NCBI RefSeq assembly: GCF_030028105.1
Contig: NC_092374.1
Location: forward strand, 194,179,345 to 194,243,344
From: Mobula birostris
Lineage: Eukaryota
Length of the DNA stretch: 64,000 nucleotides
Reading direction: 5' to 3'
Within the stretch, counting starts at the first letter, position 1, and each line of letters begins with the position of its first letter. Positions 7,613 to 47,699 of this stretch are shown here, in pieces. Made by a program: the position numbers and the translations under genes. The notes under the pieces are model-generated. The model had not been told where the DNA came from and did not search any database. It saw only the letters and a program-made list of their open reading frames with translations.

Positions 7613-7690
7613 TAAAGAAAGGGAAGCTAGATTATGAAAATAAACTTCCACAAAACATAAAAATGGATAGTAAAAGTTTTTATAATTATA

Positions 7691-21313: not shown

Positions 21314-21643
21314 GAAAAAGCAAGAACTTCATGGTTACACAAGGCCAGTCCAGTATATTTGTAGGTGAGGGTGAAATGGTCCTCTTGGTCTGTAGCCATA
21401 ATGCCAATCACTCTGGAGACACCGTGTTCTACAGCTGGTACAGGAATACATCTGAAGTCTCCAACGGGATGACAGAGTTTGCAGGGCGCGTCCTTGGGCC
21501 TGACCAGGAGGATTCATTCAAAGTTTCCATAAAGCTGGTGGACGTGAGGGAGAGTGATTCTGGAATGTATTACTGCAAAGTACGGTTAGACGGGATTGGC
21601 GTGGAAATTGGAGAAGGTGTACGGCTGACTGTGAGTCACACAC
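21314..21643 (+). CDS. NCR3: NCR3/NKp30-family VJ-type IgSF V-domain exon (phase 1-1)
   Basis: Acceptor cccactgcag|G; donor C|gtgagt. Canonical C...W...DSGMYYC and in-exon J-like GEGVRLTV. EVSNGMTEFAGRV and DVRESDSGMYYCKVRLDGIGVEIGEGVRLTV resemble human NKp30 EVRNGTPEFRGRL and DVRGHDASIYVCRVEVLGLGVGTGNGTRLVV (recalled). Confidence 0.88.
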
Positions 21644-21679
21644 GTGAGTGGTTCCCCAGCCCGAGACAATACTGAGCTT

Positions 21680-24290
21680 ATTACCACTCACTAACACCCA
21701 CCCACCCCCATCAACTTTCTATTTCTGGAGCCCTGTCCGGTTTCCCCGCACTCTGCGTAAAAATTTAACCCCTGACATCTCCTCTGTACCTACTTCCAAG
21801 CACCTTAAAACTATGCACTCTCGTGTTAGCAATTTCAGCCCTGGAGAAAAGCCTCTGACTATCCACACAATCAATGCCTCTCATTATCTTGTACATCTCT
21901 ACCAAGTCACCTCTCATCCTCCATCGCTCCAAAAAGAAAAGGTCAATTTCACTTAACCTATTCTCATACGGCATTCTTCCTAATCCAGACAACAGCCTTG
22001 TAAATCTCCTCTGCACCCTTTCTATGGTTTACACATCCTTCCTATAGCGAGCCGACTAGAAATGAGCACAGTACTCCAAATGGGGTCTGACCAGAGTCCT
22101 ATATAGCTGCAACATTACCTCTCGGCTCTTAAATTCAATCCCACGATTGATGAAGGCCAATGCACCATATGCTTTCTTAACCACAGAGTCAACCTACGTA
22201 GCAGCTTTGAGTGTCCTATGGACTCAGACCCCAAGTTCCTACTGATCCTCCACACTGCCAAGAGTCTTGCCATTAATGCTATATTCTGCCATCATATTTG
22301 ACCTACCAAAATGAACCACCTCACACTTATCTGGGTTGAACTCCATCTGCTACTTCTCAGCCCAGTTTTGCATCCTATCAATGTCCCATTGTAACCTCTG
22401 ACAGACCTCCACGCTATCCACAACACATAACCTTTGTGTCATCAGCAAATTTACTAACCCATCCCTCCACTTCCTCATCTAGGTCATTTATAAAAATCAC
22501 AAAGAGTATGGGTCCCAGAACACATCCCTGAGTCACACCACTGGTCACCGGCCTCCATGCAGAATATGACATGTCTACAACCACCCTTTGCCTTCTGTGG
22601 CAACCCAGTTCTGTATCCACAAATCAATGCCCCCTTGGATCCCATGCCTCCTTACTTTCTCAATAAGCCTTGCATGGGGTACCTTATCAAATGCTTTGCT
22701 AAAATCCATATACACAACATCTATGGCTCTACCATCATCAATGCGTTTAGTCACATCCTCAAAAAATTCAACCAGGTTCGTAAGGCATGACCTGCCTTTG
22801 ACAAAGCCATGCTGACTATTCCTAATCATATTATGCCTCTCCAAATGTTCATAAATCCTGCCTCTCAGGATCTTCTCCATCAACTTACCAGCCAATGAAG
22901 TAAGACTCACTCAGCTATAATTTCCTGGGCTATACCTACTCCTTTTCTTGAATAAGGGAACAACTTCTGTAACCCTCCAATCCTCCAGAACCTCTTCCAT
23001 CCTCATTGATGATGCAAAGATCATTGCCAGAGGCTCAGCAATTTCCTCCCTTGCCTCCCACAGAATCCCAGGGTACATCCCATCTGGTCCCAGTGACTTA
23101 TCAAACTTGACGTTTTCCAAAAGCTCCAGCACATCCTCTTTCTTAATATCTATATTCTCAAGCATTTCAGTCCACTGCAAGTCATCTTTATAATTGCCAA
23201 AATCCTTTTCCACAGTGAATGCTGAAGCAAAGTATTCATTAAGTACTCCCACTATTTCCTCCGATTCCATACACACTTTTCCATTGTCACACTTAATTGG
23301 TCCTATTATCTCACGTCTTATCCTTTTGCTCTTCACATACTTGTAGAATGCCTTGGGGTTTTCCTTAATCCTGACCACCAAGGCCTTCTCATGTCCCCTT
23401 CTGGCTCTCCTAATTTCATTCTTAAGCTCCTTCTTGCTCGCCTTATAATCTTCTAGATTCATATCATTACCTAGTTTTTTGAACCTTTCGTAAGCTCTTC
23501 TTTTCATCTAGACTAGATTTACAACAGCCTTTGTACACCACGGATCTTGTACCCGACCATCCTTTCCATGTCTCATTGGAACGTACTATCTCAGAACCCC
23601 ACGGAAATATCCCCTGAACATTTGCCACATTTCCTCCATACGTTTCACTGAGAACATCTGTTTCCAGTTTATGCTTCCAAGTTCCTGCCTGATAGCCTCA
23701 TATTTCCCCTTACTCCAATTAAATGTTTCCCTAACTTGTCTGTTCCTATCCCTCTCCAATGTTGTGGTAAAGGAGATAGAATTGTGATCACTGTCTCCAA
23801 AATGCTCTCCTACTGAAAGACCTGACACCTGGCCAGGTTCGCTTCCAAATACCAGATCAAGTATAGCCTCTCCTCTTGTAGACTTATCTACATATTGTGT
23901 CAAGAAACTTTCCTGAACACACCTAACAAACTCCACCCCATCTAAACCCCTCACTCTAGGAAGATGCCAGTCAATATTTGGGAAATTAAAATCTCCCACC
24001 ACAACAACCTGTTATTATTGCACCTTTCCCTTTTACTATTGGGTGGTCTATAAAAAAAACTCCCAGTAGAGTTATTTCCCCCTTCCTGTTTCTAACTTCC
24101 GCCCACAGAGACTCAATAGACAATCTTTTCCTGATTTCCTCCTTTTCTGCAGTCATGACGCTATCTCTGATCAACAATGTCACGCCCCCTCCTCTTCTGC
24201 CTCTTTCCTTGTCTTTTCTGAAATATTTGAAGCCTGGCTCTCTAAGTAGCCATTCCTGCCCCTGAGCCATCCAAGGCTCTGTAGATGGGA
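21680..24290 (-). mobile_element. ~2.6-kb decayed CR1 ORF2 (EN-linker-RT-3') in the NCR3 intron
   Basis: ORFs 23986-24270, 23586-24002, 22911-23507, 22575-22910, 22414-22620 (KFADDTK) and 21765-22016. Confidence 0.9.
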
Positions 24291-24391
24291 GACTGAAGAT
24301 AACAAGAATTACATTGGGGTGACTGGCTGGAGATCACACACTTATCAACCCAGGAATACTGATTGGCTCAGTGTGCAAATTATAGAACGGT

Positions 24392-24520
24392 GGCAGTGGG
24401 TCACACACTCCTCCTTCCTCTCTTGGACTAGGTGGGGCAGTGGGTCACACACTGTCCTCTCCTCCTTGGGATTTGATGGGCAGTGGGTCACATACTGTCC
24501 TCCTCCCTCTCTGTCCTATC
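24392..24520. repeat. Tandem repeat, 3 copies of a ~43-44-bp unit (ggcagtgggtcacacactgtcc...)
   Basis: Units start at 24392, 24436 and 24479. Confidence 0.85.
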
Positions 24521-24769
24521 CTATTTTCAATGGATTCTTCCTGTGTCAGTGTGGTCAACCCTCACCTTCAGGTGCTCTGATTTCCTCCCACGTCGCAAAG
24601 TCATGTGGGTTGGTGGTTTAATTGATTACTGTAAATTGCTCCCTTGGGAAGTGGTAGAAACTCAGGGGATTTGAAAGGAAGGTGGGAAGGATCGTTTATT
24701 AGTATAATTAATAGGAAAATAAATGGGATTAGTGTAGGACTGGGATAAATGTTACTCAAAGATCAACGT

Positions 24770-25432
24770 TGGATGTGATTTTAGCACCTCTCGGTCATCC
24801 TATACAATTATTGGAAGAGCAACTTCCCTATGCTTTCTGTCCTGGAATTGGGAGGAGGGGGTGTGGCAGTGACAGGAATTATTGCACCATTGAAGTGGAA
24901 GGACTCTAATCTACCTACAGTCTTTTATTGGCTCTCCTCTATTATGTCCTGTTTAAGTTTAGAGAAAATCAGAAGTCAGACATTTCACACATCCTTTAAG
25001 TTTGAGCAAATCTGACACCTTTTATCCAATATTTTCATTTAATTTGATTTATTACTCTTTCAATCTTTTTTCGAAGTTTTAGATTTGATCAGAAAGTCTG
25101 TTTTTTTTTCCTTTTTTTGGGTTGTATCCTCAAAATGGACTGCCCAGTCCCTTTTTTTTTCTTTTTTTTTAAATATAGTGTAGTGGGATTATTTTTCTCT
25201 TCATTTAAAACTCAAAGTTTTTTCTTTTCTCGTCATAAACTGACAAGAGGAGAATTGCTGTTTTCATTTTTTATTATATATTTTCTACCGGTTTAACAAT
25301 ATCTATGATTTTGACAATGTCTATCTTAATCTTGGTTTGTATTGTTATTGATATATATATTTGAGATAATTCCCCTCTTGATTGTATTTATGCTTCTTTT
25401 AAATCAATAAAAAGATTAATAAAGAAAGAAAG
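24770..25432 (+). mobile_element. 5'-truncated L1 3' end
   Basis: ORF end IMSCLSLEKIRSQTFHTSFKFEQI, T-rich UTR, aataaaaag...(gaaa)n tail. Confidence 0.6.
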
Positions 25433-25554
25433 ATTTCACCAGTGGGGTTAAAGACTTTCAGGTTGGCTACCATGTCACTGCGTGCTTCATCAGTCTCGAA
25501 GGGCCAAGTGGCCCATTTGTGCTCGTGTGTTCCGACTTGTTTCTCCCCCCTCAG

Positions 25555-25668
25555 GCAAACTGACAGCCATCGTCATTCACCTGGTGATCCTGTTAGCGGC
25601 CTTTGGGATACAAGGGAGCATCCTGCTCTGCAGCATCCTGCTTTGTAGCAAAACCCTCAGAGCAGAAA
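25555..25668 (+). CDS. NCR3: NCR3-family transmembrane exon (phase 1-1)
   Basis: Acceptor ttctcccccctcag|GC; donor A|gtaata; encodes (R)KLTAIVIHLVILLAAFGIQGSILLCSILLCSKTLRAE; phase matches the V exon. Confidence 0.7.
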
Positions 25669-26385
25669 GTAATAGCGTTTGATCTTTTACCTCTCCGATC
25701 AGTTTAAGATCATAAGACATAGTAGGAGTTGGTCATTCGGCCCATCAAGTCTGCTCCACCATTCCGTATTGAGTGTTTTCTTTTCCCTCTCGACCCTGTC
25801 CTCCTGCCTTCCCCGTAACCTTTGACACCAAAACCAATCAAGAACATGTCAGTTCTGCTTTAAGTACACCCAAATGACTCGGACCCACAAGAATACAGCT
25901 GGGCCACAGCAGCCGTAGCTGGAGTGGACTTTGGGCCGGATTGAAGCGGCATTCCCCGGGACCAAGAGCGGAAAATGAACCAATGTTTAACCGATCTATA
26001 CACAAGTCAGATTTAAAAAGTTAAGGTGTCAAGGTCGAGGGCAAAAAATCAACTGATGTTCAGCTCACCATTCCGTGAGGTTCTCAGCACTGAACTGGAT
26101 CTTTGGCCGTGGGCTCACATTCAGGGACTCTGCAGTTCATGTTCTGTGTGCCAATTTTTATTATTTGCAGTTTATTCTTTTTTTTTTGCACATTGCTTGT
26201 CTGAAGGTCTTTGTTTTTTTTATCATGGATTCTAGTGTGTTTTTTCTTTGTTTTGTATCTGCCTGCAACAATTTCCATCTCAGGGTTGCATGTGGTATAT
26301 ATACTGTGATAATAATAATGTACTTTGAACTGTTAAACCTTGAAAAGAGACAAAGTGAGATGTGCTTTTCTTCCCTCTGGTCCAG

Positions 26386-26497
26386 CAGTGCTGCTCTCCC
26401 GTCAGTAGAGGACAGAGCTGCAGTGAAAGGGTGCCGGCCAGCAGGGGTCAGTGTTGCGCTATGCGCTGGAAAACCCAACAGCACACAAAGGTGCTGA
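26386..26497 (+). CDS. NCR3: Candidate NCR3 cytoplasmic/terminal exon (alternative acceptors)
   Basis: Acceptor at 26385 gives TVLLSRQ* (stop 26406-26408); acceptor at 26405 gives IEDRAAVKGCRPAGVSVALCAGKPNSTQRC* (ends 26497). Not resolvable without RNA. Confidence 0.4.
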
Positions 26498-28036
26498 AGA
26501 ACCCTTCACTGGGTCAGGTTGAACCTGTGGAGGGAAATGGGCAGTCAGCGTCTCAGGTGGAGACAATTCCTCAGGTCTGAAGTGCCTATATGACCATCTG
26601 CATCAGAGGAAAGCTGCCCCTCTGCATCACCCTTTGGGATGGACTTCAACATTTGCATTACCACTGCATCCTCCAGTCCCTCAAACGCTCCATTTAGAGC
26701 CCAACGGAGGACACATCACTGGGTGGATTATCGTTTAGCCTTACTTCTTAAGACCTTGACAGGCCTAACTCCACCTGCCCCATTCATGGCAAAGTATATG
26801 CGACTCTGAGATTCAACTTCCAGCAGGCATTTACAGAAAAATAAAGAAATACAATAGAATTTATGAAAATCTATACATAAACAGGGTTAGATTGGGGGTT
26901 GCTGTGTGACACGGCTTGAAGGGCCTATTCTAGGCATTATCTCCATAAATAAGTAAATAAATAAATACTGATGACAAATTGTGCAAATGAAAAATATAAT
27001 ATTTCTATACTGCACACACATACCATTTTTATAGATATAATACTGTATTAGACACAGTGGATTCACAAACAAGAGAAAATCTGCAGATGCTGGAAATCCA
27101 AAGCAACACACACAAAATGCTGGAGGAAATTAGCAGGCCAAGCAGTATCTACAGAAAAGAGAGAACAGTTAGCATTTAGGACTGAGATGCTTCTTCAGGA
27201 CTGAAGTTCCTCCAGTATTTTCTGTGTGTTGCTTTTTATACAGTGGATTCCATTTAATTAGAACACATTGGGACTAGTAGATTTTGACCCAATTAGGTGG
27301 CTGCCCCAATTAGTCAAAGTTTCTTGGAAATAGATAAAAATATGTTAAAAAGACAAGCTAAATAACAAACCAGGTATTTAAATGAAATATAGGATTAATT
27401 AGAATATTACCAATGCTACAGTATGATGAAACTGTGCAACACACACAAATTGCTGGAGGAACTCAGCAGGTCGGGTAGCATCTATGGAAATGAATAAACA
27501 GTCGACGTTTTGCACCAAGACCCTTCCTTGGGACTGAAAATGAAGGGGGGAAGACATTGATGTACCCCGGGATTCTGTGGGAGGCAAGGAGGGAGATTGC
27601 TGAGCCTCTGGCAATGATCTTTGAATCATCAATGTTCAAATAGTGATATCATTTTATTTTCACTTGTGGCCTTTTCTGGATGCCCTTGCAAGTCCGAATA
27701 CTTGAAATTGCAGTGAGTAGAACAGCTCTGAATTGTCTTACTGCTTATTTCTCACCAACTGCTTCTTGAACACAGACACATGCAACTAAACACTCAAAAA
27801 CTGATCACTCTACGCATGATGTAGTGTCTGATGGCCACACAAGTGCAAACGACTGACACTAGTTAGAAACTGTTCGGCAACAGTCTCCTGTCCCAATTAA
27901 GTGACATAGTGCCCCAAATAAACAAAGTGAATCCCAGATAATTCCTCTATTAGTTTTTTGCTCTTTAAGAGTTGTCCCAAATAAGTAGCTGTCCCAGTTA
28001 ACCAATGGACTAATTAAGCAGAACCCACTGTATATA

Positions 28037-29597
28037 CAGTACGTACAGCACACCTCGCCCCCATGGCAGAGTTCATGTTTTATAGTTTTACATCATTGAA
28101 TCACAGTGGATTTAATTTGGCTTTTTTGACACTGATCAACAGAAAAAGACTCTTTCGTGTCAAAGTGAAAACAGATTCTACAAAGTGATCTAAATTAATT
28201 ACAAATATTAAACACAAAATAATTGATTGCATAAAGATTTACCCTCCCCTCCTGCCTTTTAATATGGCACACTAAGTCATCACTGGTGCAGCCAATTGAC
28301 TTTAGAAGCCAAATAATTAGTTAAAAGGAGATCTGCTTTTGGGGAATTGTGTGCAGTCAAGGTGTTTCAATTGATCGTAGTAAAAGTACACCTGTACCTG
28401 GAAGGTCCAACTGCTGGTGAGTCAGTATCCTGGCAAAAACTACACCATGCAGACAAAAGAACACTCCAACCAACTCCACGAAAAGATTATTGAAAAGCAT
28501 AAGTCAGGAGATGAATACAAGAACATTTCCAAGTCACTAAATATCCCTTGGAGTACAGTTAAGTCAATCATCTGGAACTGGAAAGAATATGGCACAGCTG
28601 TAAATCTGCCCAGAGCAGGCCGTCCTCAAAAACTGAGTGACCGTGCAAGAAGGGGACTAGTGAGGGAGGCCACCAAGAAACCTGTAACAACTCTGGAGTA
28701 GTTACAAGCTTCAGTGGCTGAGATGGAAGAGACTGCACATACAACAACTGTTTCCCATGTGCTTCTCCAGTAACAGCTTTATGGGAAAGTGGCAAAGAAA
28801 AAGCCACTGTAGAAAAAAACACATATGAAATCTCAGCTAGAGTTTGCCAGAAGGCATGTGAGAGACTCGGAAGTCAGCTGGAAGAAGGTTCTATGGTCTG
28901 ATGAAGCCAAAATAGAGCATTTTGGCCATCAGACTAAACATTACATTTGGCATAAGCCAAACACCGCACATCATCGAAAACTCACCATCCCTACCTGAAG
29001 CATGGTGGTAGCTGTATCCTGCTGTAGGGATGCTTCACTGCAGCAGGCCCTGGAAGACTTGTGAAAGTAGAGGGTAAAATGAATGCAGCAAGATACAGGG
29101 AATTCCTGGAGGAAAACCTGATGCAGTCTGCAAGAGGGCTGCAATTTGGGAGAAGATTTGTTTTCCAGCAAGACAATGACCCTAAGCATAAAGCTAAAGC
29201 TACACATAAATGGTTTAGAAGTTAAATGTCCTGAAGTGACCAAGTCAGAGTCGAGACCTCAATCCAACTGAGGATATGTGGCTGGACTGGAAAAGGGCTG
29301 TTCACTCATGATCCCGATGCAATCTGACAGAGCTTGAGCAGTTTTGTAAAGAAGAATGGGGAAAAATTGCCGTGTCCAGATGTGCAAAGCTGATGGAGAC
29401 CTATCCTCACAGACCCAAGGCTGTAATTGCTGCCAAAGGTGCATCTACTGAATACTGACTTGAAGGGGGAGAATAATTATGTAATCAATTTCTTTGTGTT
29501 TTATATTTAAATTAAATCCATTGTGATTCAATGTTATAAAACAATAAAAACACGAAAGCTTCCAGGGGGGGGGGGTGAATAATTTTTATAGGCTCTG
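28037..29597 (+). mobile_element. Full-length but dead Tc1-family transposon
   Basis: TA|CAGT... left end; right end ...gggggtgaataatttttataggctctg|TA; subterminal inverted repeats (28075-28115 vs 29505-29560). Confidence 0.9.
28447..29458 (+). pseudogene. Tc1 transposase pseudogene (paired-like HTH, GRPQKL, WSDE...QDNDPKH...DLNPTE)
   Basis: Hand translation from ATG 28447 to KGASTEY* with multiple in-frame stops. Confidence 0.9.
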
Positions 29598-30355
29598 TAT
29601 ATGTGTGTGCTGTATATGTATATAAATAATACTGGGAATGGAGTCCTTGAAAGTGATTCTGTAGGTTGGAGAATCCGTTCAGAGGAGTGGTGATTGAAGT
29701 GATCTACGCCAGTTCAGGGGCCTGATGATTATAAACTAAAAATAGTGGTGAGGAACCTAAGGCTCATGTACGTCCTGCCCAATGGTGGTAGTGAGAGGAG
29801 AGCTTGGCCTGGATGGCAGAGGTCTTTGATGACGGATGCTGCTATTTTTGTGGCAGTGCTCCTTGTTGACGTGCTGAGAGGTGGAGAGAGCTTTGCCTGT
29901 GATGGACCGTGCTGTATCTGCCACTTTTGACATGGGTGTTTCCATACCAGGCCATGATGTAAACAGTTAGAATACTCTCCAATGTGCTTCTATAGAAGCT
30001 TGACAAAGTTTTAGGTGTTATGTCGAACATACATAAACGAATATTGATTTCTCTTTCTGGTAAAAAAAAAATTCCTCCCCCTTCTCACTTAATTTATTCC
30101 CCAGTCTGACCTTTACCTCTTCTCCTCACCTGCCTATCACTTCCTCTGGCTCTCTTCCTCCTTCCCTTTCCCCTATGGTCCTCTCTCCTCTCAGATTCCT
30201 TCCTCTCCAGCCTTTTACCTTTCCCACCCACCTGGCTTCACCCATCACCTTCCAGATACCTTCCTTTCCCTCACCCGCCCCCCCCCCCCAACACCACCTT
30301 TTTATTCTGGCACCTTCCTCCTTGTTTTTCAGTCCTGAGGAAGGGGAGTTGGCCT

Positions 30356-31807
30356 GAAACATAGAAACATAGAAACATAGAAAATAGGTGCAGGAGTAGG
30401 CCATTCGGCCCTTCGAGCCTGCACCGCCATTTATTATGATCATGGCTGATCATCCAACTCAGAACCCCGCCCCAGCCTTCCCTCCATACCCCCTGACCCC
30501 CGTAGCCACAAGGGCCATATCTAACTCCCTCTTAAGTATAGCCAATGAACTGGCCTCAACTGTTTCCTGTGGCAGAGAATTCCACAGATTCACCACTCTC
30601 TGTGTGAAGAAGTTTTTCCTAATCTCGGTCCTAAAAGGCTTCCCCTCTATCCTCAAACTGTGGCCCCTCGTTCTGGACTTCCCCAACATTGGGAACAATC
30701 TTCCTGCATCTAGCCTGTCCAATCCCTTTAGGATCTTATACGTTTCAATCAGATCCCCCCTCAATCTTCTAAATTCCAACGAGTACAAGCCCAGTTCATC
30801 CAGTCTTTCTTCATATGAAAGTCCTGCCATCCCAGGAATCAATCTGGTGAACCTTCTTTGTACTCCCTCTATGGCAAGGATGTCTTTCCTCAGATTAGGG
30901 GACCAAAACTGCACACAATACTCCAGGTGTGGTCTCACCAAGGCCTTGTACAACTGCAGTAGTACCTCCCTGCTCCTGTACTCGAATCCTCTCGCTATAA
31001 ATGCCAGCATACCATTCGCCTTTTTCACCGCCTGCTGTACCTGCATGCCCACTTTCAATGACTGGTGTATAATGACACCCAGGTCTCGTTGCACCTCCCC
31101 TTTTCCTAATCGGCCACCATTCAGATAATAATCTGTTTTCCTATTTTTGCCACCAAGGTGGATAACTTCACATTTATCCACATTAAATTGCATCTGCCAT
31201 GAATTTGCCCACTCACCCAACCTATCCAAGTCACCCTGCATCCTCTTAGCATCCTCCTCACAACTAACACTGCCACCCAGCTTCGTGTCATCCGCAAACT
31301 TGGAGATGCTGCATTTAATTCCCTCATCCAAGTCATTAATATATATTGTAAACAACTGGGGTCCCAGCACTGAGCCTTGCGGTACCCCACTAGTCACCGC
31401 CTGCCATTCTGAAAAGGTCCCGTTTATTCCCACTCTTTGCTTCCTGTCTGCTAACCAATTCTCCACCCACACCAATACCTTACCCCCAATACCGTGTGCT
31501 TTAAGTTTGCACACTAATCTCCTGTGTGGGACCTTGTCAAAAGCCTTTTGAAAATCCAAATATACCACATCCACTGGTTCTCCCCTATCCACTCTACTAG
31601 TTACATCCTCAAAAAATTCTATGAGTTTCGTCAGACATGATTTTCCTTTCACAAATCCATGCTGACTTTGTCCGATCATTTCACCGCTTTCCAAATGTGC
31701 TGTTATCACATCCTTGATAACTGACTCCAGCAGTTTCCCCACCACCGACATTAGGCTAACTGGTCTATAATTCCCCAGTTTCTCTCTCCCTCCTTTTTTA
31801 AAAAGTG
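30356..31807 (-). mobile_element. Young 5'-truncated CR1 LINE with uninterrupted RT/C-terminal ORF and (tttctatg)n tail
   Basis: Open frame from LFKKGGREKLGNYRPVSL through KFADDTKL to GYGGKAGAGF* (30459); tail agaaacat repeats at 30356-30383. Confidence 0.95.
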
Positions 31808-31968
31808 GAAACATCGATTGTTTATTCATTTCCGTAGACGCGGCCTGACCTGCTGAGTTCCTCCAGCACCTCGTGTGTGCTGCAGTACCATTTATAGATG
31901 GGTGCGCATCTCCCAGCATCAGAGACCAACTCCAATAACTCCATAAAGGCCCATCATCTTTATGAACT

Positions 31969-32054
31969 TTTATTGACATTCAGCGCGGCACTTGCAATAT
32001 TACAAAGAAATCCAAGAGTCAATAAATTAGTCACATCAATAAATAAATAAATAC
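31969..32054 (-). promoter_or_regulatory. Candidate TRAF 3' end: overlapping ATTTA cluster (32038-32054) and AATAAA (31969-31974)
   Basis: Minus strand reads gtatttatttatttatt, then AATAAA ~65 nt downstream; ~2.2 kb after the TRAF stop. Confidence 0.4.
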
Positions 32055-32339
32055 AACTTGATATCATTAGGATTAAAGTGCAGTAAACAGAGTCCCAGAG
32101 TCAGCCGTCTCCTGGAGTTCAGGCTACCCAATAGTCCAGAGAGAAACTGAGCATTAAACTTCCCCATGTCTCGCTCCCCCTTTGGGGCAGGGGAGGTGGG
32201 TGGCGCAAAGGGAGATTAACCTTCCCTTCTTGATCCGGACAGCACAGGTTAGGCTCCTGTCAAATATTCCCTGGGCACGGACAGCATAGGTCCGATACAG
32301 TACTTCCTTGACAGGGATAATTTAGCTTAGCTTAGAGGC

Positions 32340-32525
32340 ACGTCACAATACAGCCCCTTCCGGCCCAACGAGCTCACGCCACCCAGTCTCACCCATGGAA
32401 CCAATTTATCTACTAACCGGTTCGACTTTGGAATGTGGGAGGAAACTGGAGCACCCGGAGGAAACCCACACAGTCACGGCAGAACGTACAAACTCCTTAC
32501 AGGGTTCCTGGTGCTATGATAATTT
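32340..32525 (-). mobile_element. HE1/V-SINE-like element (other copies ~24540-24660, 37200-37395, 40880-41030, 51960-52090)
   Basis: Core gggtttcctccgggtgctccagtttcctcccaca on minus. Confidence 0.65.
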
Positions 32526-32809
32526 AACGTTAACCGCTACACTACCGTGCCGTCCATAAATCAGATCCGTGAGGATTGTGCCAGGCAGCCCACAAGTTCC
32601 ACCAAGCTTCCGGCACCATCGTAGCAAGCCCGCAGCCCATGAACCCTAAACTGTACGAATTTGCACGTGGGAGGGAACTGGATCTCCTGGGGGGGGAAAC
32701 CCACACAGTCACAGGGAGAGCGTACAAACCCTTTACAGATAACGGCAGGAACTGAATGCCGATCTTACATTTGTCAGCCTTGCCACCATTCAATTTAGCT
32801 TAGCACAGC

Positions 32810-34150: not shown

Positions 34151-34237
34151 CGTCACACCGGAGAGTGAGATATCAAGGGTTGTTTCCACTCAGGCAGATG
34201 ATTTCACACCTGGGGACACTCCCCATCTCCCACCATC

Positions 34238-35137
34238 TCACAGCTGCAGTCCCATGGGATCCACCATCACCTTGATGTAGATGGTGTCGTTCCTGAGGTA
34301 CTGGCTGGGCCCCTTCTGGAAGAGCTCGTGCCGGGCGAAGGTGGGGCAGCCGCTGGCCACGTTCATGTGGCTCCGCGGCTTCTGGAAGGAGCTGCTCAGC
34401 GGGTCGGGCGAGAAGGACTCTCGCAGGTGCCGCTGGCCGGCCTGGTCCAGCAGCAGGAAGGTGACCTTCTGCCGGAAGGGCCAGGGCAGAACCTCGTCAT
34501 AGTCGCCCCGCACCAGCGCCAGGAAAAGGGAGAGGTGGCTGCCCTTGCCAGCGCCGTCGCCGTTGGGGTAGACCCGGCAGCAGAGGCGGTAGCCGAAAGG
34601 GTGGGTGGTGAAGTGCGGTGAGTAGAAGGACGGCCGCTGTCCTGCCTTGGCCGCCGCCATCTTCGCGGAGAAGTCTTTGATCTTCCAGACCAGGACGCCG
34701 TTGGTGCTGAGGGGCGGGGTGGGGGAAGCCAGGCCTGCCTGCGCTGACAGCTCTGCTGAGCGCAGCCCTGGCTTCTTCTGCAGGGCGTGAATGGTCTGCT
34801 CGAGGTGGAGGCACTTCTGCTGCAGCGCCTCGATCACCTGGGCGTAGCGGTCCAGCTCCCCATTCAGGCTGCGCACTGACCTCTCCAGGCCGTCGGCCCG
34901 GCCCTCCAGGGCCTGCAGGCCCCGGTCCGCAGCAACTCCCAGCTCTGACTCGGTGTTGCCGTCCAACACCCTGGAGGGCTCGGCCGTCAGCATCCTCCCG
35001 GCCTTCTCAGTGGGCTCCCGGGGCGCGTCCCCGCCGCAGGTTCTCCCGGATCTCAGGCTGGTGGCGAGGGACAGGACCTGCAGGAGGTGAGTCTGCTGGG
35101 CAACTCGGAGGTGCTCGTTCAGATCCTCCCGGTGAAA
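34238..35137 (-). CDS. TRAF gene coding exon 7 (end of ZF5, coiled coil, MATH/TRAF-C, stop)
   Basis: Acceptor ccctaccccctcag|TTT; 900 nt; NGVLVWKIKDF...RVYPNGDGAGKGSHLSLF...LPWPFRQKVT...PDPLSSSFQKP...MNVASGCP...IKVMVD. Confidence 0.95.
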   Translation of the reverse strand, partial: FHREDLNEHLRVAQQTHLLQVLSLATSLRSGRTCGGDAPREPTEKAGRMLTAEPSRVLDGNTESELGVAADRGLQALEGRADGLERSVRSLNGELDRYAQVIEALQQKCLHLEQTIHALQKKPGLRSAELSAQAGLASPTPPLSTNGVLVWKIKDFSAKMAAAKAGQRPSFYSPHFTTHPFGYRLCCRVYPNGDGAGKGSHLSLFLALVRGDYDEVLPWPFRQKVTFLLLDQAGQRHLRESFSPDPLSSSFQKPRSHMNVASGCPTFARHELFQKGPSQYLRNDTIYIKVMVDPMGLQL

Positions 35138-36454: not shown

Positions 36455-36541
36455 CTGTTCCAGACAGCCGACATCCTTAAAGGGACAGGCCACCTTCACC
36501 TTGGGACAGTTGCCATGGAGGGGGTCACAGTGTTGTTCCAA
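36455..36541 (-). CDS. TRAF coding exon 6 (zinc finger)
   Basis: ttacag|LEQHCDPLHGNCPKVKVACPFKDVGCLEQ|gttagt; 87 nt, phase 0-0. Confidence 0.88.
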
Positions 36542-37996: not shown

Positions 37997-38068
37997 CTCC
38001 GTCTTTGTCAAGTCGGCCTGGCCACAGAGAGGGCAGCTCTCCTGTTTTCCACACGTTGCCATGTGGTC
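37997..38068 (-). CDS. TRAF coding exon 5 (zinc finger)
   Basis: ttttccag|DHMATCGKQESCPLCGQADLTKTE|gtaaga; 72 nt, phase 0-0. Confidence 0.88.
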
Positions 38069-39112
38069 CTGGAAAACAGAGACAGGAGGTCGACTGTATT
38101 ATAGGCTGCAGACGGACACAGTACACGACGCATGTGTGTGGGAGAGGTGGGGGGAGGGTCAGTAACGTTACCGCATGGACGAGGACGAGGAGGCAGGGCC
38201 GTCGGGTTGGGAATAGGGCCCTTCAGGGTGCAGTTAACTAAAAAGGGATGCGGAGCAGGATCAAGCACCAGGGTCCCCTCATGCTGGACTCCTGGTCCCT
38301 GTACCCTTTCCCAGTCATTTCTCACCCCTCCATTCCTACTTCCTCCGACCCAGTCTCCTAACCCGCAGTGTCTAGAACCCCGATACCCAGAACTCCATTG
38401 CCCTGTGATTCCCACCTCACGCCTTGGTGCTGTGGCAGTGTGACACACAGTTTCCCTAACTGTTCTCGTTCCCATTACCCCTCTCCCCACCCTACCACCT
38501 CCTCTGCCTTATCTCTCACTTCCCTCCTCTGTCCCCCTCATCCAGAGCCCTCTCTCCTTTCCCCCTTGACCCTAGGCAACCACCCTCCCCCTTCCACATC
38601 CCCTCACCCATCCTCCACCCCCACCTCCCACTTTTCCCCAACTCCTCTCTCTCCTCTGCTTCCTCACCCTACCCCCTATCTCTTCCAGCTTCCTCCATCC
38701 TCTCTCACCCCCACTCATTCACCCTCCACCCTCTCTCCCATCTTGTGCTGCTCCCCCCACGTCCCTCACCTTCCACCATCTCCCTCCCTTCTCATTCCAA
38801 CCCCTTCCCTCTCTCCCGCCTCTCCCTTCCCTACTCTCACTCGCTTCTCCGCCTTGTCTGTCCGGAGACACTCTCTCTCCTCTCTGACTTGCAGTCTCTA
38901 TCTCTATACATCCCTGAGTTTCATCACTCCACCACTGAAGTCCACGCCTCCACCAACTGAGCTCCCAAACTCTGGAATTTCCTTGGTTTTCCCCAACCTG
39001 GTCAGTTTCTAAAATTCCCATCACCTTCCCTTCGCTCTTGCACCGAGGAAGTAGTTTGGGACGGCACTACAGCAATGGGTTTTGAAGCTGAGAGCCAGCG
39101 CACACACCCCAC

Positions 39113-39286
39113 CTCCAGAAGCTTGTGGATGCAGAACGTCTCACAACGGGGGCAACGCTCCATCCGCCACTCGCACTGCTGGGTCTCGTGAACCAACATG
39201 TCCTTCCTGGGACCGACAGCCTCGCAGCCAAATGCCACATTGGCACAGGGCAGGACCTGGAAACCACACTGTGCCCGGTGTGTACG
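39113..39286 (-). CDS. TRAF coding exon 4 (zinc fingers)
   Basis: catgcag|RTHRAQCGFQVLPCANVAFGCEAVGPRKDMLVHETQQCEWRMERCPRCETFCIHKLLE|gtgggg; 174 nt, phase 0-0. Confidence 0.9.
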
Positions 39287-39309
39287 CTGCATGAGAGAGA
39301 AGCCAGGGA

Positions 39310-39850
39310 GAGTGCGGAGGGGAGGGGGAAGACAAAGAGAGAGAGAGAGAGAGGGGGGGAGAGGGGGAGAAGAGAGGAGGGGTTGAGCGAATAAGAGTGG
39401 GATAAAGAAAATGAATGAGGAGAGAGAGAACAAGAAAAGGAGAGACAGAAAAGAGAGAAAGTAGGGAAAAGTGAAATCAAGGAAAATAAATGAGAGAGGG
39501 AAAGAGAGAATGAGAATGAAATAGGAATGATGAAAAGAGAGAGAGGAGAGGGAAAGAATGTGAGAAAAAGCATGGCGAAGCAAGAAAGAGGAAAAAGCAA
39601 AAGAAGAGAGAGCAAGAAGGAAAGGATAATCAAGACAGGACAGATAGAAAAAGAATGGATGAAATAAAGAGAAAGAAAAACAGAATAGAAAGAAAGAAAG
39701 TGTAAGGAAATGAGAGAGTGAAAATAGAGAAAAGTGTTTAGGAAGGAGTATAAATTAAGAGAGGGAGAGAGAGTTAGGAAGAAACAGAGAAAAAGAGAAA
39801 GAAAGATGAGGAAGAGCACAAAAGGGAAAAACAGAGGGAAGAGAGAGACC
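39310..39850. repeat. Long G/A-rich tract (giant polypyrimidine tract on the TRAF coding strand)
   Basis: Direct reading; source of spurious low-complexity ORFs. Confidence 0.85.
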
Positions 39851-41284
39851 AAAAATGATCAATAAGTATAAAACTCATATCTACACAAGTAAAAAGTTGT
39901 GCTCTATGTGAACCACGCTGCCGCTGTGCCAGGGATTGTGTGCCCAATGAGTCCACCCCAGTGCCCAACTAGGGGTAATGCCAATCACTAATGCCTTCTC
40001 TAATGAAGTACCTATCAACCTCTGCTTTAAATATACTCACTGACTCGGCCTTCACAGCCGTACGTGGCAGTAAGTACCACAGAATCACCAATAAATTCCT
40101 GCTCATCTCTGTTCTAAGAGAGTGTATCTCTCAGAAGGGCCAGTTCTACCTGCTCTGCAGACCAGGTGATGAGATTTTGAGTTAGGGTTAGAGTTTTGAA
40201 ATGCTCTGGAGGTCATCATCTCTGGCATTACTGTTGGGCTTGCCGGGAACACCCGTGAGTTTCCAGCAGGTACTTGCTGGAAGACAGAAACACAGTAAGC
40301 TCCCACTATTACTGATACGGCAGGTGATCTGCTGTTTTTCAATCAGTAGAGGGGTGAATTTCTCAGTTTTCTTCTCAAAATGGCACAGGAAGAGGATATT
40401 CGACCCACTGTCTCTCTGCCAGCTCTCAAAACAATCCCAGCACTACAATGGACCTTTTGTCCGTTCTTTCATGTATAATTTATGTTTATAATTTTGTGCC
40501 TCCTGTGAATCCTGTTTATCTGATGTTACGTGCCTGTGAGGCTGCTGCAGGGAAAGTTTTCATTGCACCTGTGCCTACGTGTACTTGTGGATGTGACAAT
40601 GAACTCAACTCTAGTCTTTGACTTTATTCCACTTATAGAAAATAGAATACAGAACAGTACTGGCCTTTCGGCCCACAATCCTTCTAACCTACGCTACAAT
40701 CAATCTAACCCTTCCCTCCTACATATGTTTCCATTTTTCTATCATTCATGTAACATGTACCGGGGAGACGTCTGATCTCTCTGCCTCTACCACCACCACT
40801 GGCAATGCATTCCATAAGCCTATCACTCTCCCTGTAAAGAATTTAAATCTGACAACCCCACCCCTCATACTTTCCTCTAACCTCCTCACAGTAAGGCAAT
40901 TTACAGTGGCTGATTAACACACCAAACCACTGATGTGGGAGTTTGAGAGAAAACTAAAAACACACACACACACACATAAACACAGCACCAGAAGTCAGGA
41001 TCAAACCCAATGAGGATCTGTGAGACAGCAGGACTACCTGCTACAAGCAGGCTGCCCCTCCTCCCATTTCAGCAGGAGACCCGTTGAATCACTCCGGCAT
41101 TCCCACCGGTTTCGAATCCAGCGGGCATGTGGACCCAGTGGACTCCACTGGCGGTCCCTGCTGGCCACCTAGTGGCAGGAGTTGGTATTACTTCCTCCAG
41201 CCCCCTTTCTCCTTGCATCCCATCCCATCCCCTCTGGGAGTTTCAGTCCATACCCCACCACCCCCACCCAGCACAGAGACTTAC

Positions 41285-41389
41285 CAGGTAGTTCCGCAGC
41301 GAACCGACCCAGTCACAGCCCTCCAAGTGAGCCGTGCAGTGAATCTTTGTGACGTAGGCGTCATTCTCCGCTGCCCTGTCCAGGTAAAC
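41285..41389 (-). CDS. TRAF coding exon 3 (RING-ZF1 linker and ZF1)
   Basis: ctgcag|VYLDRAAENDAYVTKIHCTAHLEGCDWVGSLRNYL|gtaagt; 105 nt, phase 0-0. Confidence 0.9.
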
Positions 41390-43679
41390 CTGCAGCGTGG
41401 ATAAAACGCGAGAGGTTAGGTAATGGTGGAAACCTTGTTCCCTGCGGCTTCTTGCTGCCAATTGGACCTCTGCTGCTATGTATCTGTGTATGTAAGAAGG
41501 CGGCTCTGACAACACAGAGGTTCGTAGAGTCATACAGTACGAAAGCAGGCTCTTCGGCCCACATTGTCCATGCCATGATTTTTGTCCATCTACCTTAATC
41601 CCATGACCGAAAAGCCTGGATAGAGTAGAGATGGAAAGGATGTTTCCTTTAGTAGGAGAGTCTACAATCCAAGGGAATGGCCTCAGGATAAAAGGACTAA
41701 AACTGTAAAGAGAAAGGATTTCTTCAGCCAGAGGGTGGAGAATCTCTTGCCAGAGAGGGCTGTGGAGGCTAAGTCATTTTGGTGTATTTAAGGCAGAGAT
41801 TGATAAATCCCTGATTAGTAAGGGGGTTGAGGGTTCACAGGAGGGGGTTGAGAATGAGAGTGAAAAAAAGCTGGATTTGAATCGTGGAGCAAACTCAAAG
41901 AGCCAAATGGCCTAGTTCTGCCCCTATATATTCTGGCCAATTACACATTAGGACTGCATATAAAAATACACAAATTTTGGAGATCTGAAATAAAAGCAGA
42001 AAATGCTGGGGAAACTCAGCAGGTTGGGCAGCATCTGTGGAGAGAGAAGCAGTTCAGGTCAAAGAGCATTGATCAGTATTAGCCGATGAATGGTCTTACA
42101 GCTGAAATGTTCACTGTTTCTCGTTCCATAGGTGCTGACTGACCTGCTGAGTGTTTCCAGCATTCTTTGCACATGCTTCTTTGGCCATGCTGAGAGTACA
42201 GGAACAGCGTTGGGCACAATACAGGTACGACGTGATTGCATACGGAGGGGACTTATTGGGGCTGGAAAATCCAAGCTCCAAGGACAAATTAGATAGGTTA
42301 GGATGGAGTTTTCTCTGGAACAGAGGGGGCTGAAGGGAGGCTTAATTCCCATGTAGAAAATTATATGGAACCATGATTGAATAAAGGACCAATTTCCCCT
42401 GGCTGAGAGCTTTAGAACATAGAACAAGACTGGCCCTGTGGCCCACCAAACATGATACAAATTAAATTACCCAGTAAATCTCACCTGACTCTGCACAGGA
42501 CCCATATCCCTGCATTCACTGCATATCCATGTGTCTTTCTAAAGGCCTCTTAAACATCACTATTCCACCACCACTGCTGGTAGCCCATTCCAGTAACCCA
42601 GCACTCTGTGCAGAAAGAACTCTCCTCCACACATCTGCTGTAAACTTTGAATCTCTCACCTTAAGTGCCTATCTAGTATTTGACATTTTATTTTTCCCCT
42701 GGGGGAAAGACTCTGACTGTCTACTTGAAGTTTGGATAAGTACTTGGACAGGAAGGTTACGGTGAGCTGCGATCTAGGTGCGGGTCGGTGGGTCGGCGGG
42801 ACTTGGCAGAATGATAGTTTGTATGGACTAGATGGGCCGAAGGGTCTGTTTCCCTGCTGCAGTGCTCGCTGACCCTACCTCTGCCTCTGAGACTTCAATC
42901 AGCCACTGACGCTCCAGAGAAAACTATCCAATTTTGTCCAACCTCTCCTCATAGTCTGCACCCTCTGATCCAACTTGGTAAACCTCTTCTGTACCTTTTC
43001 CAAAGTCTCCACATCTTTCCAGCAATCAGATATCTCAGGTATTCACTAAATGAATTAGAATAAATGAGAGGAGCAGTTTCTCTGCCTCAAGGATGGTAGG
43101 GTTTCTGGAGCTCTCTAGCAGAAAAGTTGAGTGAATCCGAAACCCCTCACTACAATGGAATAGTAGTTAGATGTGTACTTAAAGGGCTACGACCCCAATG
43201 CTACTCAGCTGAGCAGCACAGACACAATGAGCCAAAGGGCCTCCTTCTATACCACAAATGCTCTATGACCACCAAGTCCCATGAACGGCCTATGTCAGCA
43301 AAGCAAAACTTTCCATCCCTCAAGTTCCCGTCACCTCTTGGAAAGTTTTAGTTCCCCCTTGTATTTTACCTATTAAAATTCCCAGAAGGAGGGAGAGGGA
43401 TGTGCGGAAATTCCTGGAGATCATGAGTTGGTGGGGCCAAGAGTGATGACATCAACTTTGTTCATCGCCAGCCCTGAGTGGCCACAGAAGCGCAGTGTTT
43501 CTCTTCATCCTCCCTGCCTGCGCAGACCTCCTGAACTAGCCAGCGGAGGCTGCCTTCAATACCACTCCGAACCGTGCCAAAGCAACATCATGCACTAATG
43601 ACTCACTACTGTCTGTCTCTGGGAATCTCCCCTCTTCTCCAGCAAAACACAGATAACTCATTCCCTACGTAGGAATTCC

Positions 43680-44220
43680 AGTTAAATTCCAATTTGTAAG
43701 ATATTCCCCCATATCCGTTACTCGCTACATAAACCTCCAGAACTCCACAATTAGATTCCGTCTGTAATTCACTCCTGAATATTCATTATTCTGTGTATAA
43801 ACTACCGGAACCTCTTGAAATTCTACCCTGTAACTCACTCCCAAGTACAGCATTCTATATATAAACCTTCTGAACTCCTTAACTAAATCACTCCTGGGAA
43901 TCCATTATTCTGTCCTCTGAACTCCCCAACTAGATTGCAGACTGTAATTCACTCCCAGGTATCTATTATTGTATGTATAATCCCCCTATGCTCCTCAGCT
44001 AGATTCCAGACGGTAACTCACTACCAAATATCTGTTATTCTATGTATAATTCACCAACTAAATTCCAGCCTGTAACTCATCCCTGGAACCCATTACCTTA
44101 CAAATACAACTTGTGAACCCTCAATTAAATTCTAGCTTGTACCCATCCCTGGGTGTCCATTGTCCAATAATATAACCATCTGAGTTCTCTGACAGATTGC
44201 AGCCCATAAGTCAGTCCTGG
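43680..44220. repeat. Degenerate minisatellite, ~65-75-bp unit (ctgtaactcactcccaggtatctgttattctatgtataa...tagattcca)
   Basis: About 8 recognisable units. Confidence 0.75.
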
Positions 44221-44355
44221 AGACAGTGCCCACGAAGCAACATTCCTTGCAACCCCCACAACACAGCCCAGCTCTAATCCACATCTCCCTCCTTTGCAAA
44301 TACGTCAAACAGCAATAACAGTGATAAGATGCTTACAACACATAAGAGGTCCTAC

Positions 44356-44410
44356 CTTGGAACGAAGAACCTTCTTTTGGCAAATGTAGCAATCCGCTTC
44401 ATTTCCTGTC
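44356..44410 (-). CDS. TRAF coding exon 2 (completes RING)
   Basis: ttttag|G TGNEADCYICQKKVLRSK|gtagga; 55 nt, phase 2-0; supplies the final CxxC. Confidence 0.88.
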
Positions 44411-47400
44411 CTAAAATATGCAGAAAAAGATTAATATTTTCACATTCATTTCTTCTAACTTGGTGTTCCCAGTATGTGAGTGTTTGAGCCATTGCTGGGT
44501 TTTTGCTTTTCACAGTCAAGCCCCTTCCCTTCCAAAGGAACACCGAAGAAAAAGTACAGCTGTCCAGAGAAGATGCAGTGCACGGATGGGGTCAAATTGC
44601 ACTCAGTCCCTTCAGGGGAGATCACTGGAATTCTCCACCCTCAGTCGGAGGACTGTTGGAGGCTCCCTCATTTGTTGTGTTCAAAACAGAGGTCAATTGA
44701 TTTGTAGATGTTAAAGAAAGACAGGGGTGTAGGGAAAGGACAGGAAAATGTGACAAGGGATCATTAATTCACCTGGTTTCTCCTAGCAGATTGTACATTA
44801 GTTAGTCATTGTAAATTGTCCAAAGCGGGATCTTTGGACAGACATATGTCATGGAATTTGTTACTTAGCAGCAGCAGTACCTAAAAATTATGATAGGTAG
44901 ATAGATAGATGAAGATAGGTGGATAGATAGAGGGAGGTAGATAGACGAAGATAAATGAATACACGGGTGAAGACAGAAAGATCAAGAAGAGAGCAAAATG
45001 GTCACCAGCATGAATGCGAGAGGGAGAATCGAGATGGGGTGGAGTGGTGACAGGTGTTGAAGGGACAATAATATAGCATCTGTGTTGGATTATTGTAAAT
45101 AGATGTTGGATGATCGAGAGATGGCTTTGTCAGTGCTGCAGGGCTCTGATTTTTATGACTGGTTGACCAGGGTTGAGTTGCCAAGTCTATTCATGTTCCC
45201 TATAGACTTATATTTTAGGAAAGGATAAGTAGTTGGCCTCTGCAGAATGGCCCATTGGGTAGCTGAGTGATAGAGTCTGGGGACAGTTTATGAGCATGGA
45301 AGAAAATAAAAAGAGGGTTGGGGTAGGATTAATGTACATGGTGATTGACTGTCATCAAAGACTTAGTGATTTAAAAGACTTGTTTCTGTGCTGTACTCTC
45401 CTATGACCATAAGACATAGGAGCAGATTTAGCCCATTTAGTTCTTCGAGTCTGTTCTGCCATGCAATCATGGCTGATTGATACTATGCCAACCCTGTTGC
45501 AATGTTGGAAACAGCATGGCACATTGGTGCCAGAAGCTTGGCAACATGTGTAGGCTGCCTCCTCCCAGCACATTTTGGACTCTGTAGGAACAACACGTTT
45601 TTTTTTTGTACATTAAAGATAATCTAATCTTTAAACACATTCAATTTGCCTCTCAGAAAGTCCTTCAGCAGCAGATCATCAACCTCTTCACTCCCTAACT
45701 ATATGGGCAGCAGGCTCACGGGCACATTGCCACTTCCAACAACTACCCTGCCTAAATCACTCCACCGACTCAAGAACAGACCACGTCCCCATCCAGATCC
45801 TACTCCACCATAAACACACTCTTCACCGAAGATTCAAGAAGACTATCCACTATAGGTGAGAATTAGGAACAAAATAAAAGCAGAAGATGCCGGAAACACT
45901 CGGCAGGTCAGGCAGCGCCCATGGAGAGAGAAACAGAGTTAACATTTCAGGACAAAAACTGAATTGAAATGTTAAATCAGAGAGTCTTGACAAAGGGTCT
46001 TGGCCTGGAAGGTCAACTCTTTAATTCTCTCCATAGATGCCGCCAGCATGCTGAGTTCCTTCAGCATTTTCTGTGTTTCTCTGGATTCCCAGCATCAGGA
46101 GAACCCCTTGCATTAACATTTTTTCCTCATTATTTTCTCAGTGCTCCCTGCATTTTCTACTTCATTTTTGATTTCGGGTTTCCAACACCTAAAATTGCTT
46201 TTCACTTTCACAATGAGAATTCACCAGTAGGTGCAGGCGTGGACACCGAAGGGATTTTAAAATGAAAATAGGTTCAACTATACACACGCTGTCCATATAT
46301 TGATCACTGAGATTCTAAACTCTAACTTTAGGTACTTTTTTCTTCTTTCTGTTTGTCTCAGGATGGGGCATTTTGCCAACCAGATTTCTCTTGTATGTTC
46401 CGGCTCGCTGGGTATAGTAGTCATAGTCATACTTTATTAATCCCGGGGGAAATTGGTTTTCATTACAGTTGCTCCATAAATAATAAATAGTAATAGAACC
46501 ATAAATAGTTAAAAATATGTATGTCCCAGTAAATCTGACTCCACATCAGTACCCAGACTTACAACATTAGCCACACATTACAGGATGGGGAAAAGCTGCG
46601 GAGGGTTGCAAACGCAGCTAGTTCCATCATGGGCACTAGCCTCCCCTCTTCTGAGGGCGTCTTCAAAAGGTGATTCTTCAAAATAGGGGGCATACATCAT
46701 TAAGGAACCCTATCACCCAGGGCATGCCCGCTCCTTATTGCTACCATCACGAACAAGTTACAGGAGCCTGAAGACCCACACTCAACATTTTAGAAGCAGC
46801 TTCTTCCTCTCTGCCATCAGATCTCCGAACGGATGATGAACCAACCATGAACTACTTCATTAATTATTTGCTCTCCGTTTTTGCACTACTTATATACAGT
46901 ATATATCTCTTATTGTAATTTATAGTTTATTTTATCTACTGCCACAATACAACCGATTTAAAAACATACGCCATTGATATTAAAACTGATTCTGATTACA
47001 ATGGAGATTATCTGTCCGTTACTTCATCCCACAAATCTTCTGTGTTCCGCTCAGATCCCTCTCTCACCTTCTCTGCTACCTGGTCTAAACTTGTTTTCAC
47101 TCTTGCTCAGTCCTGATGAAGTGACTCCGACCTTAGAAGTTAACTGTTTCTTATCCCGTAAACGCTGCTGAGTTCTTTTCAAACATTTTCGGTTTTTGTG
47201 ACTGTACCTAAGCTCTTTGGACCCGAATGGCTTACTGTCATGGTGCATTTTTCCTTGAAGGCTAGGAGAAGGCTTGTTAGACATAAGAGGGGCATTAAAA
47301 GGCTTACTGGGGAAGGGGGGGGGATCCATCCTGTACAAGGATGATAAAGTTTTAATTTGAGAACTATGTAAATATGGATTAAAGTTATGTAATAAACATA

Positions 47401-47475
47401 TTTTTAAAAAGACAAACTCTGAGAATTCTATCCACCTCCCGGCGATGATCCACCACCTCTGTCCCCCTGACTCAC

Positions 47476-47624
47476 CTGAACAGATTCTCCAGGCAGGCGG
47501 TACAGTAGCGGTGGCCACATTCCGTCTGCTTCGGTTTGATCAGCAAGAAGCGGCAGGCGGAGCACAGCAGGCAGGAGCTGGCGATCGGATCCACTGGGCT
47601 GATGCCTGACACCAAGGCTACCAT
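47476..47624 (-). CDS. TRAF coding exon 1 (ATG, C3HC4 RING first part)
   Basis: Acceptor ggccag| at 47633, ATG at 47624; [51 protein letters not shown]|gtgagt; 149 coding nt, phase 2. Confidence 0.9.
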
Positions 47625-47699
47625 AATCCCACACTGGCCGAGGAAAGAGACGCAAATTAAACTTCTGCTACTCAAATACAGCGCCGGCGTCAGAGAGTG

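Follow-up and report, generated by a model that had tools for sequence, protein, structure and literature searches.

Does the major histocompatibility complex (MHC) of jawed vertebrates hold a TRAF adaptor gene of its own? The textbook view, to our knowledge, is that vertebrates have TRAF1 to TRAF7 and that the MHC is without any TRAF. The question is raised by a 64,000-nucleotide stretch of the genome of the manta Mobula birostris (assembly GCF_030028105.1, contig NC_092374.1, positions 194,179,345 to 194,243,344 of the forward strand; hereafter the window, numbered from its first letter), in which an initial annotation had placed an NCR3-family gene tail to tail with a TRAF gene that might be the MHC-side copy of an ancestral TRAF. 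We hold with good confidence that the minus-strand gene encodes a full-length TRAF adaptor/E3 ligase of a distinct, ancient jawed-vertebrate clade, called M1 here, which belongs to the TRAF1/TRAF2 side of the family and has its home in MHC class III, and that the plus-strand exons facing it are a member or a remnant of a cluster of NKp30-like (NCR3-like) receptor genes.

The TRAF gene of the manta window

The TRAF gene runs on the minus strand from position 47624 to position 34238. Its seven coding exons are separated by introns that are all of the GT-AG type, and the intact 513-amino-acid product obtained by splicing is identical to XP_072115312.1, named "TRAF2-like [Mobula birostris]". The exons are the following.

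47476..47624, minus strand: TRAF (M1) coding exon 1, start codon and first part of the RING (Pfam TRAF3_RING)
44356..44410, minus strand: TRAF coding exon 2, end of the RING
41285..41389, minus strand: TRAF coding exon 3, zinc finger 1
39113..39286, minus strand: TRAF coding exon 4, zinc fingers
37997..38068, minus strand: TRAF coding exon 5, zinc finger (zf-TRAF at residues 163-223)
36455..36541, minus strand: TRAF coding exon 6, zinc finger
34238..35137 (stop included), minus strand: TRAF coding exon 7, linker, coiled-coil region and MATH/TRAF-C (Pfam MATH, 3.4e-41)

The N-terminus of the protein shows a RING followed by TRAF zinc fingers (PF21363 TRAF3_RING, 32.5 bits; PF00097; PF02176 zf-TRAF, 32.9 bits), and the C3HC4 RING/zinc-finger pattern of Cys and His residues is complete in the translation. 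The C-terminus is a MATH/TRAF-C domain (PF21355, 7.9e-41; PF22486, 1.4e-37) that matched the solved domains of TRAF3, TRAF2, TRAF5 and TRAF1 with E values of 1e-47 to 1e-54, TRAF3 being the best; the coil before it gave a weak SlyX-like match at residues 288-337. Comparison of the manta and sawfish M1 genes yielded a ratio of nonsynonymous to synonymous substitution rates (dN/dS) of 0.21 overall, with 0.13 for the RING and zinc fingers, 0.39 for the linker and coil and 0.14 for the MATH domain. The manta M1 gene is intact and under purifying selection. Between 95 and 100% of the sampled words of its last exon were present in four small public runs of one organism, two of which (X3 and X4) left unique-sequence parts of positions 20000-25999 uncovered. 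These data suggest, without proving it, that the four small runs are transcriptomes and that M1 is expressed.

Positions 393, 395, 399, 410, 447, 453, 455, 456 and 467 of the peptide groove were conserved in all 25 M1 rows compared. For the groove of TRAF2 we presumed the numbering R393, Y395, D399, F410, F447, S453, S455, F456 and S467, anchored on a bat TRAF2 sequence. Searching M1 for the BIRC3/cIAP-binding coil (PF16673, E <= 0.01) gave no match; the same profile scored 41 bits on M2, a second extra TRAF described below, and 91 bits on shark TRAF2. The predicted layout of M1 begins with a RING and five TRAF-type zinc fingers and continues through a coiled-coil region to MATH/TRAF-C. The protein would most likely trimerise, and to judge from its residues it would most likely dock on PxQE-type motifs in the tails of TNF-receptor-family proteins. 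Because the BIRC3-binding coil is unrecognisable, M1 would probably work without cIAP recruitment, unlike TRAF1 and TRAF2.

Relationships and chromosomal position of M1 and M2

A word-based search detected full-length relatives of M1 in many elasmobranchs, caecilians, coelacanth, axolotl, gar, a turtle and squamates, under the database names 'TRAF2-like', 'TRAF3-like', 'TRAF5-like' and 'TRAF2'. An exhaustive profile search over 1.84 billion representatives recovered the same set together with sturgeon and Pleurodeles, and no mammal, bird, teleost or frog M1 appeared among its high scorers. We then placed these proteins in a tree (IQ-TREE, LG+C20 posterior mean site frequency (PMSF) model, 62 rows, 525 columns), the reference clades of which were named from cluster records. 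The manta gene fell within an M1 clade with 100/100 support and a stem of 1.19, whose members, from sharks, rays, sturgeon, gar, coelacanth, salamanders, caecilians, a turtle and squamates, branched in roughly species-tree order.

The M1 clade was part of a superclade (100/99) that also comprised TRAF1, TRAF2 with lamprey proteins, invertebrate TRAF2-like proteins and M2, and that lay across the deepest split of the tree from a TRAF3+TRAF5 clade (99/83). TRAF2 formed a clade of its own (100/99), which included shark TRAF2 and left M1 outside. A tree constrained to unite M1 with TRAF3/5 was rejected by the approximately unbiased (AU) test (p-AU 0.0007), which speaks against orthology to TRAF3, and a constraint uniting M1 with M2 was not rejected (p-AU 0.134). 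The branching order among TRAF1, TRAF2, M1 and M2 was a polytomy. Judged on its sequence, M1 is neither TRAF2 nor TRAF3, despite the names it bears in databases. Sharks possess separate canonical TRAF1, TRAF2, TRAF3 and TRAF5 genes besides, and M1 and M2 are therefore extra genes. The likeness of M1 to human TRAF1 and TRAF2 of 9q33-34 lies in the common superclade, in the RING, zinc fingers, coiled-coil and MATH that it shares with TRAF2 and in the identity of the groove residues checked, whereas it differs from them in forming a separate clade on a long stem, in having no recognisable cIAP coil and in its location in MHC class III rather than in an equivalent of 9q33-34. With TRAF3 and TRAF5 it shares a similar length and domain order, and some databases call it 'TRAF3-like' or 'TRAF5-like', but the tree separates it from both.

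Lamniform sharks carry an additional M1-type copy of 519 amino acids (Cetorhinus P0018, Carcharodon P0420). In the tree this copy branches as the sister of all other elasmobranch M1 genes (100/98), and it shares a chromosome with the ordinary M1 of these sharks.

The chromosomal position of M1 could be read directly in the sawfish. The gene table of the sawfish MHC chromosome NC_067438.1, a supplement of Verissimo et al. 2023 (PMC10751288), lists LOC127586120, named 'TRAF3-like', at 5.88 Mb, flanked by bag6/FAM102A-like and a DDR gene, and LOC127586057, named 'TRAF2-like', at 4.61 Mb, flanked by abhd16a and nfkbil1. Between the two TRAFs stand csnk2b, CLIC1, ddah2, three NCR3 genes, AIF1, PRRC2A, DDX39B and APOM; the NCR3 cluster, AIF1, PRRC2A, DDAH2, NFKBIL1 and CSNK2B all lie at most 1.3 Mb from sawfish M1, and a mannose-receptor-like gene is near it (PMC10751288 supplement). 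No TRAF appears in the main text of that paper. We mapped the sawfish M1 protein (P0002) to 5.88 Mb of CM019888.1 (19.9 Mb), and the sawfish M2 protein to 4.62 Mb; an ankyrin-repeat gene, nfkbil1, follows M2 at a distance of 6.5 kb downstream. As these coordinates fall inside the ranges of LOC127586120 and LOC127586057, we take CM019888.1 and NC_067438.1 to be the same chromosome and both assignments to be direct.

In the leatherback turtle, M1 starts 5 kb after a 401-amino-acid ankyrin-repeat gene, the last exon of which is 49% identical to sawfish nfkbil1 (E 1.5e-43). An Atlas search with that last exon had given no more than a weak J-domain lead, which the direct match to nfkbil1 replaces. 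M1 orthologues are found in class III in both species, beside bag6/FAM102A-like and DDR in the sawfish and 5 kb from NFKBIL1 in the turtle. For the manta itself, the following flank connects the window to the sawfish locus.

47676..63100, no strand assigned: upstream TRAF flank, colinear with the 10 kb upstream of the sawfish orthologue by ordered tblastx matches

The matches run in order from 47.7 to 63.1 kb of the window against 9.95 to 1.15 kb of the sawfish locus (L001), the manta side being stretched about 1.6-fold. Colinearity of the two M1 loci covers the introns, about 15 kb upstream (in manta) and about 2 kb past the stop, and the ordered non-coding similarity upstream may include conserved regulatory sequence. 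The superclade, the class III orthologues of sawfish and turtle and this colinearity largely bear out the proposal of an MHC-side TRAF related to TRAF1/TRAF2. The initial annotation had regarded synteny with a TRAF3 or TRAF5 block as decisive against it; this is not what we found, because the joint clade is rejected and the orthologues occupy class III positions.

Sterlet M1 adjoins a gene with two C-type lectin domains. Spotted gar M1 (L002, CM082505.1, 40.12-40.15 Mb) lies within the span of a 444-amino-acid V-set gene and is convergent with a 268-amino-acid V-set gene; the gar locus is dense in low-complexity tandem repeats. In reedfish, a 'TRAF3-like' gene (LOC114651186) that could not be assigned to M1 or M2 is located between AIF1 and ddah2. 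Neighbour look-ups returned no gene within 10 kb of the TRAF in Hypanus, Microcaecilia and Anolis, nor for manta M1 and manta M2.

The initial annotation envisaged a single MHC-linked TRAF. M1 is indeed MHC-linked, but it is one of two such genes, the other being M2. The M2 clade (99/92) unites a 459-amino-acid 'TRAF2-like' protein, present in sharks and rays, with an axolotl 'TRAF1-like' protein (P0116). Manta M2 is XP_072115345.1 (P0258), encoded outside the window on the same 210-Mb contig as M1, and the two genes share a contig in seven elasmobranchs (Heptranchias, Cetorhinus, Scyliorhinus torazame, Hemiscyllium, Hypanus, Pristis and manta). Axolotl M1 is likewise on the same contig as P0116, the salamander protein that groups with M2. 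Besides their chromosome, M2 and M1 have their superclade in common, and sawfish M2 sits in class III by NFKBIL1 and ABHD16A; M2 differs in its length of 459 amino acids, in having kept the BIRC3-binding coil and in forming its own clade, with about 36-39% identity to M1. On sawfish NC_067438.1 a 'FAM102A-like' gene is found close to each MHC TRAF, at 4.49 and 5.81 Mb (PMC10751288 supplement), a hint that FAM102 and TRAF were duplicated together as one block.

The V-set exon and candidate transmembrane exon facing the TRAF gene

The following parts lie on the plus strand facing the TRAF gene and in the DNA between the two genes.

21314..21643, plus strand: V-set (VJ-type) immunoglobulin exon, NKp30/NCR3-like, phase 1-1, CAG acceptor and GTGAGT donor (Pfam V-set, 3.2e-13)
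25555..25682, plus strand: candidate transmembrane and short-tail exon, with a possible donor after 25668 and otherwise read-through to a stop ending at 25682
30459..31979, minus strand: retroelement reverse-transcriptase open reading frame (ORF) of 506 amino acids, from the ORF list, in the spacer and part of neither gene

The exon at 21314-21643 is a single VJ-type V-set exon most like NKp30. Its four best matches among solved structures are all NKp30 (E about 1e-8), with antibody V domains next (2e-7); it ends in a J-like GEGVRLTV motif, and its neighbours in the Atlas are generic V-set 'antigen receptor' clusters. The candidate transmembrane exon at 25555 is preceded by a pyrimidine tract and a CAG acceptor, is in frame and in phase with the V exon and encodes a hydrophobic stretch, about 29 residues long, in which Arg and Lys are absent. 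The coding ends of the NCR3-like and TRAF genes converge and are 8,556 bases apart, in agreement with the roughly 8 kb given before. The tail-to-tail arrangement of an NCR3-family gene with a TRAF gene therefore stands as far as an intact TRAF and convergent V and transmembrane exons are concerned, but the receptor is incomplete: of the leader, V, transmembrane and tail parts of a complete NKp30 gene, V and transmembrane exons are present and no leader was found. Conservation of the NCR3-TRAF pair, which had been proposed as a check, was not borne out either, tblastn with the V and transmembrane peptides being unmatched at the sawfish, gar, turtle, sterlet and anole loci.

We considered whether the two exons could nonetheless belong to a functional receptor gene of the single-V, NKp30-like type, one that works as a pair with the TRAF and whose leader had been missed. 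An open V exon, good splice signals and a phase that fits the transmembrane exon are what such a gene would show, and one contig of run X2 begins to match at 21311 after 49 letters located elsewhere, which could be a spliced leader. Against this, no leader exon was found in window positions 1-21313, where a scripted scan yielded a single poor candidate; the public annotation has no gene within 10 kb of the manta TRAF, a span that covers the transmembrane exon; and a homologue search with the V-exon ORF, which covered proteins of 83-262 amino acids and not longer ones, returned no matching protein. Public contigs over the V exon came from two small runs only, at low depth and with 91-95% likeness, so that they may derive from paralogues or from another species. 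An X2 contig at 25398-25709 spans the transmembrane exon and its upstream flank contiguously, i.e. unspliced, no joint from V to transmembrane exon is listed among the public contigs over 20000-25999, most of which derive from repeats, and the V exon has zero coverage in two runs that contain the last TRAF exon in full. We therefore regard a working receptor as rather unlikely. As neither a leader exon nor an annotation nor clear RNA was found, the receptor may be a gene remnant, and the plus-strand exons are more likely to be a remnant of the surrounding NKp30-like cluster than a working gene.

The shark NCR3 (NKp30) family is reported to be MHC-linked (as cited in PMC12227049) and NCR3 rows appear in the sawfish table (PMC10751288 supplement). 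The manta V exon resembles this family as a germline-joined VJ-type V-set whose best solved match is NKp30; it differs in that the manta exons come without a leader found, annotation or clear RNA, and in that the transmembrane segment has no basic residue. The two exons would be a member or a remnant of a large NKp30-like cluster around manta M1. If gene order is as in the sawfish, the manta V exon cluster lies on the opposite side of the TRAF from the NCR3 cluster between DDAH2 and AIF1.

The spacer between the V and transmembrane exons and the TRAF is filled with retroelement and transposase fragments. A retroelement similar to that at 30459-31979 is found at 21.6-24.3 kb and shows very high repeat depth in public contigs. 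A Tc1/mariner-type transposase remnant at 28384-29305 of the window is 57-68% identical in amino acids to positions 7377-8305 of the locus beside sterlet M1 (L005); this match most likely reflects a widespread transposon family and not synteny. The window also contains runs of N at 3756-3993 (238 bases) and 4448-4795 (348 bases), the flanks of which are low-complexity and rich in G and A.

Origin of the MHC-side TRAF genes

How did a TRAF come to lie beside NKp30-like exons? One explanation would be that TRAF2 or TRAF3 underwent a lineage-specific duplication and that the duplicate came to lie beside an NCR3 copy in rays, with no deep MHC history. The database names 'TRAF2-like' and 'TRAF3-like' would fit it, as would TRAF3 being the best solved match of the MATH domain, and the tight adjacency of V exon and TRAF was not seen in the sawfish. 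It is contradicted by orthologues that extend from sharks to squamates in a topology resembling the species tree, by the class III position in both sawfish and turtle and by the rejection of the TRAF3/5 clade, and we consider it extremely improbable. The preferred reading, an ancient M1 with its home in class III, has points to its disadvantage as well. The MHC linkage of the manta copy itself is deduced from orthology and from colinearity with the sawfish; M1 might be misplaced in the tree owing to its long stem; the groove assignment depends on the presumed TRAF2 numbering; and the only hint of M1 transcription is the presence of its last exon in small runs of unrecorded type.

A stronger form of this same reading, not in contradiction with it, is that M1 and M2 are ohnologues of TRAF1 and TRAF2 produced by the two rounds of whole-genome duplication (2R): a tandem TRAF pair of the proto-MHC would have been copied, one copy going to 9q33-34 and the other to the MHC, where it was later lost in mammals. 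The presence of four gnathostome clades (TRAF1, TRAF2, M1 and M2) within one superclade supported at 100/99 is consistent with it, as is the linkage of M1 and M2 in every species checked. We presume that human paralogues of the FAM102A-like, torsin-4A-like, NOTCH, PBX and SAPCD genes are located at 9q33-34, and that human TRAF1 directly adjoins C5, mirroring C4 in class III. The sawfish MHC table has FAM102A-like by each TRAF and also torsin-4A-like, NOTCH, PBX and SAPCD genes (PMC10751288 supplement). On the other side, the four clades form a polytomy, the AU test does not reject a union of M1 with M2, equivalent to a local duplication within the MHC (p-AU 0.134), and the TRAF2-like proteins of lamprey group with TRAF2 alone (97/95), so that some of the splits may predate 2R. 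We place the chance of a 2R origin a little short of even. With similar reserve, we tentatively propose that the ancestral jawed-vertebrate MHC class III carried linked M1 and M2 genes beside NFKBIL1 and NKp30 receptors, as counterparts of TRAF1 and TRAF2 on the 9q33-34 paralogon. By human gene order, the TNF and lymphotoxin genes belong to the same MHC neighbourhood.

No account of a TRAF encoded in the MHC turned up in a search of open papers; subscription journals were outside its coverage, and a prior description is possible. Gene models of M1 are already public, under misleading names and in a supplementary table. TRAF2, TRAF2-like, TRAF3-like, TRAF5-like and TRAF1-like have all been applied to M1 or M2, a naming that misleads. 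Our results point to two further TRAF paralogues behind these names, of an age that makes them common to sharks and reptiles, in class III by NFKBIL1 and the NKp30 receptor genes. A signalling adaptor thereby joins the gene families that link the MHC with the 9q33-34 paralogon, and provides a new marker for reconstruction of the proto-MHC. Because M1 has kept a TRAF2-type groove and is without the cIAP-binding coil, it may wire signals of TNF-receptor-family proteins differently in the animals that keep it. If the MHC-side TRAF pair is ancestral, the primordial immune complex would have contained a complete TNF arm of ligand, adaptor and regulator, which would then have been broken up in mammals, birds, teleosts and frogs.

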